From Iphione sp. A-MEVVRFRX5 (Eukaryota), in contig OZ320317.1 of the NCBI GenBank assembly GCA_976226885.1, positions 52,886,001 through 52,950,000 on the forward strand: DNA of 64,000 bases. The letters run 5' to 3'. Every line of letters begins with the position of its first letter. Positions within the stretch are counted from its first letter, which is position 1. Shown here one piece after another: positions 3,061 to 63,175 of the stretch. A program made the position numbers and the translations under genes. The notes below the pieces were generated by a model. That model made no database searches and was not told where the DNA came from. It saw only the letters and a list, made by a program, of their open reading frames with translations.

Positions 3061-6000
3061 CACATATTTTATTCTGACAATGATTACAGAGCTCTACATA
3101 TTGTCTCAGGATCCAGATGTTATTAATCCTTCTAAAATCGTTGGATCTTAACCTTTCCCAATATACGGTCATGCTTTCCAGCTGAACAACCCATCCCTTT
3201 CATATAAGTGATCGATCCACGAGATAAAGATCTCTGCGATCCGTCATACTTGCATGTGACTTTTCTCAGATACAAGCGGTGAGCTGTCTAAACATTGCCG
3301 ATTTCCGTACTCACAAGTGACCATTCCACTACAAATATCTCTAGGAATACTTAATACCACTGATAATATCACGATTAAAGAAGCCGGGCCGAATTTTTGT
3401 TATAATTGCACGTTGGCCGTCCTTGTCTTTCATTTTATCCACGCAAAGTCCAATATCACAGACCATGCCATTAGAAGAGGCGGCCCCATGCGGACAGGCA
3501 CGGGTCAATATACAGCACACCAGCAGGGAGAATCATCCAAGTCTCGTGTGAAAAGCCTGGCAAATAGATCTGGATCAATATTGCGGTCCAAGATGGAGGT
3601 ACGTGTACATGTATGGCCTCGTTCAAGGATCACAAAAGCACTGACTGTGACTGCTCATCAGCCGTGTATTAAGGCACAACTGAGTATGGAAAACTTCTGA
3701 GTTCACTGATAAAATGTCCTTCCGAACTATCCAGCCTGCTGCATTCCCAGCAATTCATTCGGATTGTTCCACTTAAAGCGGGAACCTTTACTGCTCAAGT
3801 GATAAATTCAGTTATTCTTCATTTCCTTTTGTTCCATAAGACTAATTCAGGACCTTTCAGCGCCTTTCGTAATGAGAAACGGTCAACATTAAAAATAACC
3901 CTTCCTTAATGGCGGTCTCGTCATTTTTCACTCTATACTGAGCCCACGAGAGCGAAATGATGAAACAGAAAGCGCGCCTTGTATACTAGTCTCCATGAGT
4001 TACAGTAGAGTTCGCCCTATCGTGGCCTACATGTCAGCAATCAACTTGTAGAGGAAGTAATAAAGCCTCCCCAGTCAATAAGGGAATTTTCGCCCTTTGT
4101 GTTGCCCTGCCAATCCCCACCAGCATAATTACATATGGGCCCTTGCAGACCCGGCAGTTCAATTCTTATTTCAGCGCACATTAATGAAGGGATTACAAAG
4201 CAAGTCATTTATAAGGCATAATGGATCTCGAGGCAGCCACCATAGCCAGCAGGGGTTTCTTTCCCAAGCCTATATTGAAAGCAACAAGTGCAAAATATTG
4301 TACGATATATCAGTCAGGTGATCATTAAGAAATCTGATTTATTCTATTAACCCAACGAAAAGGCACAAAAGAGTTAGAAATAGCAAGATGCTCCTCCCCG
4401 CCGCCTACCTACGCTTGCACAGAACGACCGAGACTGGCCGCCCCTCTGACCTTGAAGCGTGGTGAGAGGCAAATATATCAACCTAGTGGACCCCTACCAG
4501 TTTCAACGACCATTAAGCCAGTGGTAACGTGCAACGCTGGGACAATGAATCTCGGCGCCATGCCATCCGAGCCCGCAGCCATGTCTTTCTTCCTACGTGC
4601 ACCCTTGCCCCCACTGGCATCAATTCTATTGCGTATGATCCCAGAATTGAAGGACCTGACGCCAGGGTTACCCTTAAGTCAGCGCACTAGATTTCATTCT
4701 ACATCTGCATGCACTTTCAGGGCGTCATACTTTGCTCACATTCGATAATATTTCTTTTAACCCCTTCCTTCTTGCCCGTCCATCATGGAGCGTTGCTGGC
4801 TACCTCTGACCACTATTGGCACAGCTATAGACAGCGCTCCTAGTGAAAAGTTCGACGGCAAAACTTCTTCTTATAACTAAATTAGTCCAGTGTGTTGCCC
4901 CATGGACACAAAATGACCAATGCCTCAATTCAAACCAGCAGGAGGATCTAGTATAACACCTTTGCTTACCCCATTTACTGAGTAAAGGCTGTATGCTAGC
5001 GAGTAGAAAGTCCTATCACTTGCTGTCACTTCCCTGTAGTTCCCCCAGTGTGACCACTGCCTCAGTGCCTATGAGCAGCAGTTCTTGCTTATCACTCTTA
5101 CTACGTTCAGCAAAATAACCAACGCCTTCAAGCGGTGAGCAGCTGGTCTCTACTGCTCATCGCCACCTCTAGTCCCAACTAAAATACATGGCCTTGACAG
5201 GTGCCATCACACCATCGGGACACGAGAGTTTTGGCAACGCCTGAAAAACTGTCAGTGCCCGACAGGCCATGAAATGTTCACCCGGTGGCAGAGATTTGTT
5301 TCACAACTGAACGCGTCATGGGGGCTAGGGTGATGGTGGGGAGGGTACTCATGACTTGCTTATAGTAGGCACTGTTGTTTCAATATGGCTTCGCGTTGCT
5401 TTAAGGGGTGTCTGGCTTACAAAGTATGGCATTGCGCCTTGCTTAAAGGCCTGCCTCCTTGACTTATTATTTCTATAATAGGAGGTGCAAGCATCTAGTT
5501 GTTTCATGTCGAAGGAGTCAGCAACCCTATGAACACACTCTATAAAATAACAATTTTAATGGAAAGAGTAAAAAAAAAAAAAGAAAAAAACGTGATAAGG
5601 CAGCTGAGGAAATTTTCAATCAGAGTAATAGATAAGAAAGAAGAACATTATTTAAGCGAGATTTATCTTGCACCAATAAGTTCCTCCATCTTGGTGCGGC
5701 AGACAACAATTTCTTTTCAAAGAGTCATGGTATTCCAGCACTACACTAAGATGAGGTGCAGCTAGGAGCGCCCGTTGTCATGGGAACAACGGGCATGTGA
5801 TGCAGTTCATTTCCGCCTCCGCGTGTGACGAGTCATCTGAATGCTGCCTGCTGGCAAGGCTACTCTTACCTCGCGCCATCAAGTACTCACCCCAAACTGC
5901 AGCCCGTGAGTCAAGACCCCGTGCCTAACCCACCACCCCCTCCCAACCCAAACCAGGGCCCCCCCTTCTTGCACACTGGGTGTTATCGAGCACTCTTCTG

Positions 6001-8308
6001 TCAGTCACACACGCAAAACCACCCATGACTTGAGCAGATAAGGAATCCACGCATGCGCCGAGCACATTCTCTAGCTGCTCTCAGCAAAAGTGCTCGAGAC
6101 GCTCCCACGAGACAGCGGCGTCCAAGGCGGCAGGCGCCAAGTCATTCAACGTCGGCAGACTGTCCGAGACGCCGAGGTAACATGGCGGACGGTCAGAGGG
6201 GAAAGGCTGAGAACTGAAGCCGAACATGGCCGCTCAAGGGGCCTCCATCCTTATCTGCTGAAAAGACTCCTCCATCTCAAACATTCTTCCCGCTTCAATC
6301 CATTGCTGCTTGTGCATCTGGAGAACCAATTGCTGACTGGGCGGTCGCTCAATATAGGCCCCATGCACAATGTCCGCGTTATAAACGGTTTGCACGGATC
6401 TTCTGAAGTATCTGATGGCGTCTGTTGAAAAACTTTGCCTCGTACTAAAAAGTACCATCGCTTACCACACCACGACCGAAAAGCGCTCATTACTTAAAGT
6501 GGTTCTTATAAAACAATAATAAGGGGAAATACGTTTTTTAGGTTTGAGGAAGACTTGTGTCTCCTCTGTGGCATGTATGCACTTTAAACACCGGACAAAA
6601 ATCTTCTGAAGTATCCAGTGGTTAGAGTTAATTGTTGAAAAGCCTTTCTTCATACTTCATATAAAAAGGCGCCATCGCTCATCATCCAACAAAGCACTCC
6701 CCCCAAAAGATACTCTAATAAAAACAAAGAAAATGTTTGGTTTTTAGTTTTCAGAGAGACAGCGGCTTTTCTCCCAAAACCAGCTCAGGGGAGGTTACGC
6801 TGAGATTATCGTGTTTTACAAGTGATTATCTTGCGTTAGGTTCTGGTGGTGACGGACTGTTATGCCCACTGTGTCAGAACGAAAACATTTCGTTTTAACT
6901 GCACCGGGCCTTTGGGTGTATATAAAACCTTCAGAAATACTTTTGCAACAACTTTCACATTATGAATACACTGTAGTGTTGATTCTTTACTCCTCGTCGG
7001 TAGGGGAAACGCTGGTGTCCTGAAAAGGATGACTGCGCCTGTATTTTCGTCCGAGTGGTGCTGTGGCAAGTAGCACGTACTACGCTGACTACTCCTGAAG
7101 GGGTTAGGTAGAACGCTGGAGTATAAAGTAGAGGAAGGGGGACGTTTGGGTTAGACCCCTTGGGGCCAGCGTCTGTAGGGGATGTCCGACAAAGTGCGCT
7201 GCCTGCACGTGGCTCCCAGAAGACTGTCGAACCCAGACAGGTCGTGTCCAGCCAATGATTTCTATCGGCAGTCGCTGGTTTTTAATGTACTGGCACTGCA
7301 TCCACCCGACACCCACACACAAGCATGCATCTACTGCCTACGTACAGTGAGGCACTGGAGAGCTACTCTTATCATAAGTCTCTACTCAAATGCGGCACTT
7401 ACGTATGTGTATTATACTTATTATAAGTGTCTTGTACTGTGGGTAGCCAATACATGTATACTGTAAATGACGCTGCCATGAAATCGAGGTACACTGATCC
7501 TACGTGATTATTCTTCAAGTAGTGAGGAATGTTATTAAAATATAAACAAAATCTGACCAGACTCGTTTCTCTGAAGAAATATGCACAAATTCCAGCTTCT
7601 CTCTGTCTACATCTTCCTCCTTCTCTCAGCTTCTCTGTCTCTCCCTAGCCCCATCTCCTCGCCCATCGCCATTACCATTACCCGCGGGAACGAGCGCCAG
7701 GGCCATGCCGCTCCTCTGAGCTGCGAAGGAGTGTTTACTGGGGGTCAATCTAATAAGGAAGGAAGACGGCAACCAAGACATGCGCAGAAAGCGGCAAGCG
7801 TCAGCGCCACCTGTCAGCATTCACACTAAATACGACCAGTAAACACATTCCATTCTCTCAGTCTGGACTCTCTCAATGCTCAACTTTAAATGCATCGCAG
7901 CAAAAACTGTCATGAATTTCTGGCGTTTGCCTCTCGCGTTTTTTTTTTCACGTATTCTGTAGAACTAATGGAAACAACTGGGCAGCAATCATGGGAGGCA
8001 ATGCCTCATTTACACATGTGTGCCTGAAACCTACAAGTTCGGCGAGGTTAGCCTTTCGTAAGCACTTCCTGCCATCCCTTCTACTGGCACCCACTCTACC
8101 AGCTTTTAGTGCCCCCCCCCCCTCCAACAATCACCACCACCTCCGCCTACCAACCCCGGGCAACAGCCTCAACACAACCACTCTAACAATTTCCACAATT
8201 ACTCCTGCCCTCCATCCTCACCACCCTGTCATTGCCACTGCCAGGACGTCCCAAATTTGCTGGTTCGCCTCTTGACTTCAGCCTTTCAAAACAGATTGTC
8301 GCCGACTC

Positions 8309-8457: not shown

Positions 8458-10170
8458 TAAAGCGGACCGAGAATATGAATAGCGCTTTGTACTGCCCCTA
8501 AAGTGTTTGAATAAGCCCTGTCAGGGAATCGCCCTGCAGTAATGATTCCGTCCCGGTGACCAAATTATCTTTCAAGGTTGAGAAATGTATGTTTTATGCG
8601 GCTGGTTCGTGATGGCTGGTATAAAAGACGCAATAAAGATAAGCGAGGCCATCTTATCTTTTTAGGTGAGGACGTTCACAACAATCATGAGAAAGCGTTT
8701 TCTTTTAAATGACCAAAATTCAAAAAGTCGAGGCTCGTTTTTATCTCCTAAAAGAACACCGCAAGGAGCATCCAAAAAGACACTTGAGATGGGACTGAGG
8801 CTATCACTGCCTGCCTGCCTGTCAGACTTGTGGACTGACTGTCTGACTGTCCATCTGTCTTTCCCTATGTATACTTGCATGCCTACTGTTTGAAGCCTTC
8901 TATGTGGACAGGAGCGCCAACTTATGAAGACGACCGCTGGAATGTGACGAGGAGCCCTTGATTTGATTGGTCGATTTTGGTAAAAGGTTGCGGGCGATAT
9001 GCTTGCATGCGAAGAAAGCGCTGGAAAGAGGGAGGAGGTAGACGCGCGGAAGGGGGGGGGGGCGCTGCTGACTGTTGACGCACTTGGTCACTCATCCATC
9101 ACCTGCTGCTGTGCACTCTCATCGTGAAGCACTACAGTGGTGGAAGCTCAGGCCACAGAAGAGGGCGTTAGAAGGGTTTCACCTTCGACCGCTCATCAAT
9201 TCAACTTGAGCTGGACCTCCGCAATGATTTATGAGCTCGCTGTCATGTTTTGAGCTACTCAAATTATGTCACGGCGATTGGATTCTGTGTCAGTAACAGT
9301 GACACTACCGGGCGACAACCACCGTTCAAAGATAGACATTCTCTTCAGGGAATTCTAGACTGAGCTTGTGTAGACCTGATACAGTCCCCAAAGCCCTGGT
9401 TATAGTACAGAAGAAAATAAAGAGCTTCTCTGTTAAGGGGGATAATATTAAAACTGATGCTTGGGAATGAGCTTTGGACGCCAGACTCCCAAAGCAGACA
9501 GGCTCTGAACGATCATGACAGGGAGCACATTAAAAAAAAACGCACTGCCTACATATAGGAATTTCATGGAAGGTTCGGGAGATGTATGACGATGTGGATT
9601 GGAGAAGGCAAGAATGACATGCAAGGCCCGCAAGAGAAATAATTCCAGAGAAGAAATGGTCGCGAAAGCGTACAGCGGGGCGGGCAGAGTCAGTCCGGAA
9701 GTAGGGCGGCGGGTCAAGGTCAGGGATAGAGGGCAAAAGGTTTTCCCGCTTCTTCAGAAACACTCAAGGTGATAACTTGACCCCGAGGTCTTCTCGGGGC
9801 CCGAGGTCTTCTCCGGGTACCAAATGCCTTCTTGAGCTCGCTAGACGACAGTCATCCGTCAGCAAACTTGGACATCTTGGACATTAGTATATATATGTAT
9901 TCAACGTGCAAATTTCCCTCTCCTAAACAACTCCCTTCGCCTATCCACGTATGGGCGAACAAGTAGAAACAGGCCAGTTTTTTCTGTCCTTGATAGACGC
10001 GTATCTGCGTCCTGACAGAAAAGAACTGATGCTTATTTCATGATCATGCAGTAAGCATGAATGTAAAATATCTTCCAATGGTTGTGCAATATTTCGGTGA
10101 GTGTCGCGCACCTTACAGGTATTATGTACAAATGTTTTTTTCCCCTGTGACCAGCATAACTGTACAGTGT

Positions 10171-60054: not shown

Positions 60055-60069
60055 CGTATACAGTGTCCC
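60055..60069 (+). repeat. Left copy of 15-bp target-site duplication CGTATACAGTGTCCC
   Basis: Identical to 61418-61432. Confidence 0.85.
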
Positions 60070-60284
60070 TAACTGGAACGAAAAAATACAGCTGGGCCAG
60101 AAGCAGACACTACCCTGTTGTGACAACCTGGGCTGGTTGTCAAGCCTCCTGCATGCTTTGTCATGGTGACAGTCCATTCCAATTGTTGACAGAAAATAGT
60201 CCCTCATAAATGATCAAATATTTCATTATTGAGGGGAGTATTTGTGCACACACACATAAATTAATAATATTGCAGGGTTTTAGA

Positions 60285-60319
60285 GACAGGGTTTCGCCCT
60301 TCAGGACTCATCAGGTGTC
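60285..60319 (-). ncRNA. Minimal type I hammerhead-ribozyme-like motif (stem III/cleavage triplet abnormal)
   Basis: Minus strand GACAC-CUGAUGA-GUCC-UGAA-GGGC-GAAAC-CC-UGUC: conserved core, 4-bp stem II, and GACA/UGUC stem I. It lies about 185 nt after the PLE stop codon, where PLE pseudo-LTR hammerheads are known to occur. Confidence 0.7.
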
Positions 60320-60503
60320 ATATTGTTGCTATTATTTCTTGTTAGGATGTATTCCTACATTATTGCATCAGAAAGGATATATGCACATATATGGTGCATA
60401 AATGTCCTTAAATATGGCTTAATTTGCTGGGATTGGAGGGGAGACCAAGTAAAAATAAAATTTTTGTACGAAGTTTGGTACTTCCCCCTATCCCCAGCTT
60501 GTA

Positions 60504-61376
60504 TTAGCCATATTCCGGTGCATCAATTAGGTTGAGTCCATAGGGTGGGAATGTCTTCAGTCTATATATCCACTTTTTCTCTGCTCTGTTCCTTAGTTCC
60601 TTGGCTCTGTCTGAGTCAGGGCTGCACGTTATGAATTCTAGGACGTATATCTCGATATCGTCCAGGCCACGGTGGTTCTGTTGGCGGAAGTGTGTGCCTA
60701 TGTCGCTGGGTGTGTGGTCTTTAGTGATTTTTAGGAAGTGTTCTTGCATCCTATCCATTACTCTTCTCTTGGTTTGTCCTACATACACGGGGCCACAGTT
60801 CCTGCAGCCAATGGCATATATAATGTTGTTGGTCTTACAGGTGACATTGTGTTTGATTAGGAACGATTGCTTCGCTACATGCGATCGGATGGTTCCTTCT
60901 CTGACCAGACGCTTACAATATCTGCATGTGGTCATGGTGCATTCTTTCAAAGGTTTGCCCATGAGGGCACTCTTATGTTTTGTGTTTTCCTCAGGGTGAT
61001 AGTCCAGTCTAGCTCTGACAAGGTAATTGCTCAGATTGTTTGGTCGTCTCAGACCGGTTATGAATTTGGAGTCATGTATAGATTTCGTTCTATGTGACAT
61101 GCTTAGAATACCCCAGTTTTGTGTTGCTATGCGTTTTGGGTCATTGAAGGTAGGATTATACGTGGTCACAAGTATATTGGGTTTTGTGGCTTCTTGGTTT
61201 TCTTGCCTATTCTTTTTTTGTCTCGCTGTCCTCAGGCTTTGCATGGACGCTCTGTTAATTCCCTCAAGTACTATATGTACGGGGTAGCCTCTATCAAGCA
61301 GGGCTTTGCCTGTTGTTAGGCAGTGTTTGATGAAGTCTTCTGTGTGTGTACATATTCGTCGGAGACGTAGGAACTG
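60504..61376 (-). CDS. Partial PLE polyprotein: RT thumb, Cys-rich linker and GIY-YIG endonuclease (290 codons, no internal stop, 5' truncated)
   Basis: The listed ORF 60504..61244 extends 44 codons upstream as QFLRLRRICTHTEDF...LLDRGYP (PLE thumb). It contains linker CTMTTCRYC, GIY-YIG box IIYAIGCRNCGPVYVGQTKR...QEHF and C-terminal EKKWIYRLKTFPPYGLN. Confidence 0.9.
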   Translation of the reverse strand, partial: QFLRLRRICTHTEDFIKHCLTTGKALLDRGYPVHIVLEGINRASMQSLRTARQKKNRQENQEATKPNILVTTYNPTFNDPKRIATQNWGILSMSHRTKSIHDSKFITGLRRPNNLSNYLVRARLDYHPEENTKHKSALMGKPLKECTMTTCRYCKRLVREGTIRSHVAKQSFLIKHNVTCKTNNIIYAIGCRNCGPVYVGQTKRRVMDRMQEHFLKITKDHTPSDIGTHFRQQNHRGLDDIEIYVLEFITCSPDSDRAKELRNRAEKKWIYRLKTFPPYGLNLIDAPEYG

Positions 61377-61377
61377 T

Positions 61378-61378
<1 letters not shown>

Positions 61379-61417
<39 letters not shown>
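61379..61417 (+). repeat. A39 tract at the 5'-truncated end of the PLE (poly-T on the coding strand)
   Basis: Read directly, between the PLE junction and the right direct repeat. Confidence 0.95.
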
Positions 61418-61432
61418 GTATACAGTGTCCCC
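61418..61432 (+). repeat. Right copy of 15-bp target-site duplication CGTATACAGTGTCCC
   Basis: Identical to 60055-60069. Confidence 0.85.
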
Positions 61433-63175
61433 TCGGACTGCGACGACCTCTCTAAACAGACCACCTCCACAAAAAGACAATTTTACTTACAGAGGGCACT
61501 CTACACTTACACGAGCATTGCCCCTAACGCCTGGCTAGAGCACCAAAGGTATACATGTACATTCATTGTGTTACGTATGTCTCTACTTGCAAACTACCTT
61601 TTATGGGTGTAACATTGTATACGAAATCTACAGAAACCAATTTAGAAAGGATTTGATCATTCAAACAGACGTTCTTACATTTTCTAAGTTCATGTATACA
61701 TAGCCAAAAATCGCAGTCAAAAGAGGCAGACATGTCGTCTCTTGTCCTCTTTTCAGCGTCAGGTTACTTCTGTTTGGTCTCACGTTCACTTGTTGAATGT
61801 CAACAGAATGGTGTTCATTTCGAAAAACACTCAGCCGCTCAAATGGCTATAAAATGAAGCAAAAGTATAACGGAGGGCAGTTCTCTTTGTACGTGCATCT
61901 CTCGGTGCTTCGGTGCCCCCTATTTTCTCCCCCACACAATACAGGTGTATACCCAACACTGTCGCTCATTGTACTAGTTGTCCTAAATCGCTTAAAAATA
62001 AATGCATGCACTTGCAGTATAGGCCCTTCGCAAATCAACATGCTCAGGGGTCGTGCTTTATACTGTATGTCACCGGAGCATCTTCGGGACACTGTCACCC
62101 GAGTACTTGTGGGCAGCTCAGGCCTTTCGAAAAGGGGCAAGTGATTCCCAAAACCAGAACGGTGTGAAGTTCGTTTGAAGGGGCAGCTGATGCGACCGCA
62201 CAGTCAGCAACCGTAGTGGCAACCTAACTAAGGACCGGTGAAAATTAATGCTGATAAGAAGAAACTCAATCCCATGAAGCAAGTCGTACAGGTCAACGGT
62301 CGGTTACGTATTTCTAGCAGAAAAGATACTAAGCATGCAATCGTATTGTTTTCCACGATAAGTATATGTAGTTTCTACTGTGGTGGAAATATTGCAATTT
62401 GGGTCTGTCGTGCCTCAACTGACTCAATTCTGCAGGAACAGGAGTAGGAGTTGCGTCTGTCAGGTCATAGGTTGGAGCCCATCGAACTCAGAGGTAGCCT
62501 GGTATGAGCAAGCTGTGGTAGGGGCTGGTAAGTGCTACACCTTGCTGTAGTCAGGTCTGGACAGGGTATGGCTGGCAGTGCGACACACTGCAGTGGTCTG
62601 CGCTTGATACGGTCAACTTCTTACTGGCAGGGCACTCCAAGAATGAAGCCGGTCATTATGGCTAAGGGAAAAAAAATCTGTCAGAGCTGACCTGTGTCAG
62701 AGCATGATCTAGTTGTGTCATTTCTAGGTACACTTGGGGATGCTTCTCAAATATACCAACTGAGGAGCATAACTTTTTTTTTGCTTCTCGACGTGGCAAT
62801 GTCTTCTCCCAGGAGCATAACTTTTTGGTTGGAGTGAACATCACCGCTTTCAATGTGACTGGATGGGTGAGGTAGTACTGGAATACATGTACAGTGGAGA
62901 CCCGGTCAGAGAACATAACACAGCGGAGACCGTGGAATAGACCATATATTTCCCTGTCACGTAAACACATACAAGCGCATACACGAGAAGATTTTTAAAA
63001 AATGAATCAAGGCCTTATATCTTATACATAAAGCATGCATTGGACTGCTTTCATTTCAAGACAGAATCAGCAAAAACTTGGTAAACTTGGTCACAGATTC
63101 AAGCACACTTCGTATGGGGCATAGCTTCCACATGTCCCACATGAAAAGGTCTGAGGTATCAATCTGAAAATCGCC

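Follow-up and report, generated by a model that had tools for sequence, protein, structure and literature searches.

The 64-kb window analysed here (64,000 nucleotides of contig OZ320317.1 from Iphione sp. A-MEVVRFRX5, "the window" meaning this whole stretch) carries at 60055-61431 a solo insertion of a Penelope-like element (PLE), which is 5'-truncated and lies in normal PLE polarity, with its 3' end at 60070 and its 5' end at 61378. Between the upstream target-site duplication (TSD) and the truncated 5' end stands a homopolymer that reads as T on the PLE strand, and such a T tract at the 5' junction is a trait of this PLE lineage. Insertion by the element's own target-primed reverse transcription (TPRT), with a self-made 5' T tract, was considered the most probable explanation (probability of about 0.8). 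It is based on the constant 3' end of the copies, their variable 5' end, a stagger of about 15 bp, and the recurrence of the T tract as a regular feature of the lineage.

The 15-mer CGTATACAGTGTCCC (plus strand) occurs exactly twice in the window, at 60055-60069, where it abuts the canonical PLE 3' terminus, and at 61417-61431, where it adjoins the T tract; no match to it was found across 100 shuffles. An exact 15-bp direct repeat around an insert of about 1.35 kb had been reported in a preliminary description made from the letters of the stretch, and this was confirmed, with the end of the second copy at 61431, one base off the earlier position. The insert between the repeats measures 1,347 bp and consists of 1,309 bp of PLE on the minus strand (60070-61378), delimited by genomic homology and comprising the end of the reverse transcriptase (RT) thumb, the GIY-YIG endonuclease and the 3' untranslated region (UTR), followed by a pure 38-nt homopolymer at 61379-61416 (A38 on the plus strand, T38 on the PLE strand). 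The plus-strand poly(A) described earlier is thus real, but 38 nt long and not 39. As also noted earlier, no AATAAA precedes the A tract: neither AATAAA nor ATTAAA was found in the 40 nt ahead of it, and no poly(A) signal was seen near the 3' end of the window copy when the sequence was read directly.

Genomic copies were searched for in the single assembly (1.18 Gb) from which the window itself derives, and 29 further loci with 65-93% identity to the window PLE were found. For the mapping of the ends, the query was the insert with 500 bp of flank on each side. Homology halts exactly at 60069/60070 in most loci (more than 20 other copies of 65-93% identity), all of which share the terminal motif ...TTTCGTTTCAGTTA(G), while the variable end of the copies is always on the side of the T tract. 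Such a constant end indicates that the cDNA was primed there by TPRT of the element itself, and it argues for normal PLE polarity, since arbitrary ends at 60070 would be expected if a long interspersed nuclear element (LINE) had copied an antisense transcript. The "reversed polarity" formerly attributed to the insert was therefore abandoned, 60070 being the canonical 3' terminus of the family. A pattern search for this 3' end returned 2 places in its strict version and, in a looser version, 14 places as compared with 10 for a control pattern. The 3' junction is itself slightly variable: 1-4 extra bases (TT, TA, TC, AAA or TTTA) stand between ...GTTA(G) and the TSD in seven copies (L005, L006, L011, L025, L026, L034 and L035).

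TSDs were detected by taking the DNA downstream of the 3' end of each copy and looking for its repeat on the upstream side, the T tract not being used as a criterion. They were found in 23 copies, the window's included, with lengths of 10-17 bp (mode 15; 14-16 bp in 18 of the 23) around inserts of 27 nt to 5.6 kb whose 3' end is constant throughout; about 40 further listed genomic copies are left out of this copy table. In 21 of the 23 copies the upstream TSD is immediately followed by a T run of 4 nt or more, which reaches 8 nt or more in 16 of them, and the mean T count per 12 nt is 10.0 after the upstream TSD versus 2.9 before it (Wilcoxon p = 3e-5). The tract is joined directly to the 3' end of the top strand, that is, to the end of the upstream TSD. 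Scoring genomic copies for 5' poly-T, TSD length and breakpoints had been proposed in the preliminary description, and the outcome supports one of its two options, namely that the PLE machinery produces poly-T at the 5' junction. The downstream flanks of the copies are without a T tract, which shows that the tract was made during insertion.

The tract takes various lengths behind TSDs that differ from copy to copy. The TSD of L003 (or its first bases) reads TGCTTCTACCACCCA and is followed by T15, L035 has AACGTGTGTAATCCT followed by T17, with the break inside the RT, and own TSDs precede T18 in L005, T14 in L014, T18 in L025 and T15 in L032. The shortest case, L066 (C26:53861069-53861085 region), comprises a 15-bp TSD (GAAACATGTTCCCTT), T14 and no more than the last 26 nt of the PLE, and it resembles the outcome of a TPRT event that was aborted, yet tailed and sealed. 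Most young tracts are pure T. In L011 (C2:80114685-80115472 region) the tract is instead periodic, (T6-7 G) x4, which could result from stuttering on a short template or from later microsatellite growth.

The 5' truncation points are random, except that short copies and the pseudo-long terminal repeats (pLTRs) tend to begin some 400-430 nt from the 3' end (L033 4399-4415, L037, L025, L026, L030 and L017). In this cluster a T run is followed by AAATTTTATTGTTAC, and the cluster may correspond to the sense transcription start of a pLTR promoter. Two particular origins of the window breakpoint were examined and rejected. Slippage on a U run at the breakpoint is out, because the relatives read ...CCATATG|GACAG at this place; the near-coincidence with the breakpoint of L007 (within 2 nt) is of a kind expected by chance, about 0.5 such pairs being predicted from the spread of the breakpoints.

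The insertion target could be characterized from its two sides. The left flank is single-copy in the genome, while the right flank (61419-61485, plus strand) was identified from its genomic paralogues as the terminus of a Tc1/mariner-like miniature inverted-repeat transposable element (MITE), TA|TACAGTGTCCCCTCGGACTGCGAC..., which is the DNA hit by the PLE. The 15-bp repeat is made of 2 bp of the single-copy flank (CG) and the first 13 bp of the MITE and, because these two bases belong to unique flank, it is still a true TSD. The MITE paralogues were used as a stand-in for the empty site: a first look at the genome gave 694 candidates with 88-96% identity over about 65 bp, all of them preceded by unrelated sequence and free of an A run, and nine of them read TATACAGTGTCCCCTCGG unbroken, again with no A run. 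The A tract is part of neither the MITE nor the flank. Among the findings that, according to the preliminary description, would speak against its account was a 15-mer forming part of the PLE terminal repeat in other copies; every other PLE copy has a different TSD, so the 15-mer is not part of the PLE, and no such adverse finding was encountered among those that were checked. The MITE terminus is abundant (TA|TACAGTGTCCCCTCGGACTGCGACCACCTCTCTAA; window 61419-61485; L042-L050) and the similarity of the window to the paralogues ends at about 61485. A matching inverted terminus was not found within 1.6 kb, the window showing one recognisable terminus.

RNA features were examined in the terminal 400 nt of 28 aligned copies, and they point to the sense strand of the PLE. 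A split motif, conserved in this alignment, is predicted to be the self-cleaving hammerhead ribozyme of the family. Its 5' half (60286-60319, minus strand) reads GACAC-CUGAUGAG-stem II-CGAAAC-CCUGU, with compensatory changes in stem II and helix I, and its 3' half (60106-60118, minus strand) reads ACAGGGUA|GUGUC, so that 7 of 7 positions pair in helix III and 5 of 5 in helix I. The motif is of split type I, with a loop III of about 175 nt and the cleavage triplet GUA, and its core is kept in at least 22 copies. Helix I occurs as covarying pairs (GACAC/GUGUC in 8 copies, AACAC/GUGUU in 13, GGCAC/GUGCC in 1), helix III covaries as well, and a few G-U pairs of the hammerhead would become A-C mismatches on the opposite strand. 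A scan of the insert and three related loci against Rfam returned no hammerhead match, even at E <= 1, and simple local folding of the core gave no better result than shuffled sequence (z = -0.15). The cut is predicted at 38-41 nt before the 3' end of the element (in the window between 60111 and 60110, 41 nt); lying inside the retrotransposed unit, it hints at a permuted or circular template. The contrast formerly drawn between PLEs ending in hammerheads and this insert ending in poly(A) is moot, since the window copy carries the predicted split hammerhead of its family on the strand of the open reading frame (ORF). Next to the 3' half, the alignment of 3' ends revealed a hairpin in the 3' UTR (60121-60143, minus strand; TGACAACC...GGTTGTCA), the arms of which covary between copies (TGACAACC/GGTTGTCA to TGGCAACC/GGTTGCCA; consensus TGRCAACC...GGTTGYCA); it is likely to be a recognition element of the RT. 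Taken together, the G-U pairs of the hammerhead and the covarying hairpin support the sense strand as the functional RNA.

The coding remnant of the window copy (60504-61376, minus strand) is a stop-free ORF of 290 codons (61376 to 60507) followed by a stop at 60506-60504, and it begins with QFLRLRRIC. As stated in the preliminary description, it is a PLE frame cut mid-codon just before these residues: full-length relatives read ...GIPYG|QFLR at the breakpoint, which places the 5' break inside a Gly codon. The translation contains IIYAIGCRNCGPVYVGQT and matches Pfam PF01541 (GIY-YIG) over residues 184-273 (E = 1.3e-5, 25.9 bits for a cut-off of 22.6). Two Cys lie between GIY and YIG in this domain, and a CX4CxxC linker is present (CTMTTCRYC in the window ORF, CINNDCRYC in L033). 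According to Craig et al. 2021 (PMC8557442), a zinc-finger-like CX2-5CxxC linker upstream of GIY-YIG marks Neptune/Nematis-type clades; judged by its sequence, the element is a PLE with a Neptune/Nematis-type linker, a label that is based on the linker. Thirteen related proteins were found in ENA assemblies (28-56% identity).

One relative, L033, is full-length, and its RT-endonuclease ORF shares 68% protein identity with the window remnant. This last ORF contains RVT_1 and then GIY-YIG, RVT_1 scoring 27.4 bits, under the Pfam cut-off of 29.6. The 5.2-kb body holds two further ORFs upstream of it (5066-6550, 494 aa; 6637-7998, 453 aa), for neither of which a Pfam match was found; the RT's N-terminal portion is probably encoded by the second. 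The order of the locus is TSD (AACTGAAGTAGCTTTT), T24, a 400-bp pLTR, the 5.2-kb body and TSD, the pLTR (4401-4796) being 99.2% identical to the 3' end (9606-10000). L037 has the same pLTR layout. In the family (L033, L037) the pLTR takes the form of a 5'-truncated tandem copy ahead of a full-length one, which is not the case for the window copy. The junctions between pLTR and body, which are not target junctions, are T-rich in both loci (GTTAG|TTTTTCTCTTATTC in L033, GTTAG|TTTTTTCATTTTTTAGC in L037; the subfamilies are only about 68% identical), and the one in L033 is without a long T run.

On this basis the following course of events is proposed for the window insertion. The endonuclease would nick the plus strand of the window after ...GTGTCCC (60069), and the freed 3'-OH would prime cDNA synthesis at the canonical 3' end of the sense PLE RNA, from 60070 onwards. 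Synthesis would halt after 1,309 nt, inside the Gly codon of the RT thumb, and the 3' end of the cDNA would then gain about 38 A's. With the other strand nicked 15 bp away, its 3'-OH would prime the second strand, in which the A tail would become T38, with the PLE copied after it. The odds that the RT of the element generates the tract by adding dA to the cDNA, whether template-independently or reiteratively, are put a little below even; the dA tail would be copied during second-strand synthesis or would precede a jump to another RNA. The T-rich pLTR/body junctions fit a tailing at the end of each template. In a broader and more tentative version, the RT, as a sister of telomerase RT, would dA-tail the cDNA on leaving any template, and the tract would mark every template end, the pLTR/body junction included. 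Under this broader version, which one might put at about one chance in three, the tail could prime either the second strand at the cut target or the jump to the next RNA.

A different origin of the tract within the element's own TPRT would be that the top-strand 3'-OH first copies a piece of poly(A) tail, after which the RT switches to the cDNA; this is the main alternative, though an unlikely one, and the tail would be that of either the PLE RNA or a bystander mRNA. Tract lengths of 10-38 nt do resemble pieces of poly(A) tail, as does the purity of most young tracts, and the somewhat elevated T content of the last two TSD positions (12-13 of 23) could reflect annealing to A's, although it fits a dA-tailed cDNA equally well. 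Copying of a tail is opposed by the fact that inserted copies are without an A tail at their 3' end, that the missing poly(A) signal near the 3' end of the window copy would place the tail beyond read-through sequence of unknown content, and that there is no antisense flank-derived filler between the T tract and the PLE; nor does it predict T-rich internal junctions between pLTR and body. A jump of the first-strand cDNA to a poly(A) tail was rejected, since the sense strand would then carry A's and not T's.

The preliminary description had favoured neither of two routes, one of which, LINE-driven retroposition of a polyadenylated antisense PLE RNA, is here regarded as very improbable, as is the variant in which the PLE RT copies such an RNA after priming on its poly(A). 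Under either variant the RNA would begin at base 60070 and the A tract would be its genuine 3' tail. A38 next to a 15-bp TSD does resemble a LINE-type retrocopy, Arkhipova et al. 2013 (PMC3846280) consider antisense templates, in connection with inverted PLE structures, as well as bidirectional promoter motifs of pLTRs, and in 5 copies an AATAAA lies on the antisense strand 4-7 nt ahead of the A run at the 5'-end hot spot; because of that discussion and of these 5 copies, the antisense models were not put at zero. They would nevertheless need a start site exactly at the last base of the element in every subfamily, with the cDNA always reaching it, and poly(A) sites spread over 5.6 kb, whereas AATAAA and ATTAAA are absent within 40 nt of the tract (antisense strand) in 18 of the 23 copies, the window's included. 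They would further imply an RNA of 26 nt for L066, and they fit poorly with the lack of a long T run between pLTR and body in L033, with nick sites that are not T-rich in the LINE manner, and with conserved RNA structures whose G-U pairs lie on the sense strand. The least probable account, with a probability close to nil, is that the A/T tract pre-existed in the target, that the repeat is a chance one, or that the locus is an assembly artefact. Thirteen of the 15 repeat bases indeed equal a MITE terminus with hundreds of genomic copies; against this stand the two unique flank bases in the repeat and the single-copy left flank, the MITE paralogues without an A run at their edge, the same layout at 22 independent loci with a different TSD each, and the failure of the 15-mer to appear in any shuffle.

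Some observations weigh against insertion by the element's own TPRT with a self-made tract. Little or no T run is present in L009, L027 and perhaps L017, and about 11 further copies could not be scored because no TSD was detectable in them (5' end beyond the DNA read, or decayed). No near-identical source copy for the window insert was found among the scored matches, the closest being 93% identical over 618 bp and, at full length, 82%; the recent event proposed earlier is for this reason weakly supported, although the insert has an intact frame, TSD and tract. The tailing step is without direct precedent, since the R1/R2 elements add tails of any sequence that are seemingly short and are not homopolymers of 10-38 nt (PMC2718515). 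Finally, the support is drawn from a single genome assembly of one species.

A poly-T tag of about 4-40 nt, carried by nearly every insertion of the lineage, is a readable footprint of how a PLE integration is finished (second-strand priming, the 5' junction, the origin of the pLTR), and it also gives a concrete biochemical prediction for a telomerase-related RT. If tailing does occur at every template end, the T tract records how the tandem repeats and the 5' junctions of PLEs are built. For annotation, the tract helps to locate the true 5' boundaries of PLE insertions, and poly(A) with a 15-bp TSD beside an antisense PLE fragment can be mistaken for a retrocopy made by a LINE.

LINE-mediated retrocopies have in common with the present insert an A tract that abuts a TSD of about 15 bp. 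They differ in that a LINE would be expected to leave a constant end at the tract and a variable far end, whereas here the tract end is variable and the far end constant; the insert moreover has no poly(A) signal and a nick site that is not T-rich, and its tract lies on the strand opposite to the functional RNA of the element.

The closest relatives by structure are the canonical endonuclease-containing (EN+) PLEs of Neptune/Nematis type, with which the element shares a single RT-GIY-YIG ORF, a CX2-5CxxC linker, two Cys in the GIY-YIG core, frequent 5' truncation, a pLTR derived from a tandem copy and short TSDs, and in its case a predicted hammerhead in the 3' repeat. It departs from them in a TSD tightly centred on 15 bp and in the splitting of the predicted hammerhead by a loop III of about 175 nt. 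Craig et al. 2021 (PMC8557442) and Arkhipova et al. 2013 (PMC3846280) describe for PLEs a "tail" of 30-40 bp, inverted copies, junctions with microhomology, variable TSDs and (TA)n/(CA)n targets. A description of poly-T at the 5' junction of PLEs was not found in the literature searched, which included passages of these two papers, though one may still exist; as far as this literature shows, the junction tract is a new variant within known PLE integration.

Two systems in which bases are added at the corresponding step can be compared with this variant. In EN-deficient PLEs (Athena and relatives), as outlined in PMC3846280 and PMC8557442, the cDNA, truncated at the 5' end of the element, is likewise extended at its 3' end by a simple repeat before fixation, and the RT is likewise of the sister group of telomerase; the added sequence there consists of telomeric repeats, placed at chromosome ends by telomerase, while here it is poly-dA at an internal, TSD-flanked site. 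The 5' junctions of R1/R2 elements (Stage & Eickbush 2009, PMC2718515) resemble those described here in that extra bases occupy precisely the junction of the upstream target (TSD) with the element's 5' end, and are attributed to addition by the RT at template run-off or before it engages the cDNA; the priming of the second strand by microhomology in R1/R2 was counted as a further likeness. The R1/R2 additions can be of any sequence, are seemingly short in the cited examples and occur in a fraction of copies (PMC2718515), whereas about 90% of the copies in the present lineage have a T homopolymer that can reach 38 nt. The non-templated bases of R1/R2 are the nearest mechanistic parallel to the T tract, and the telomeric repeats of EN-deficient PLEs a looser one.

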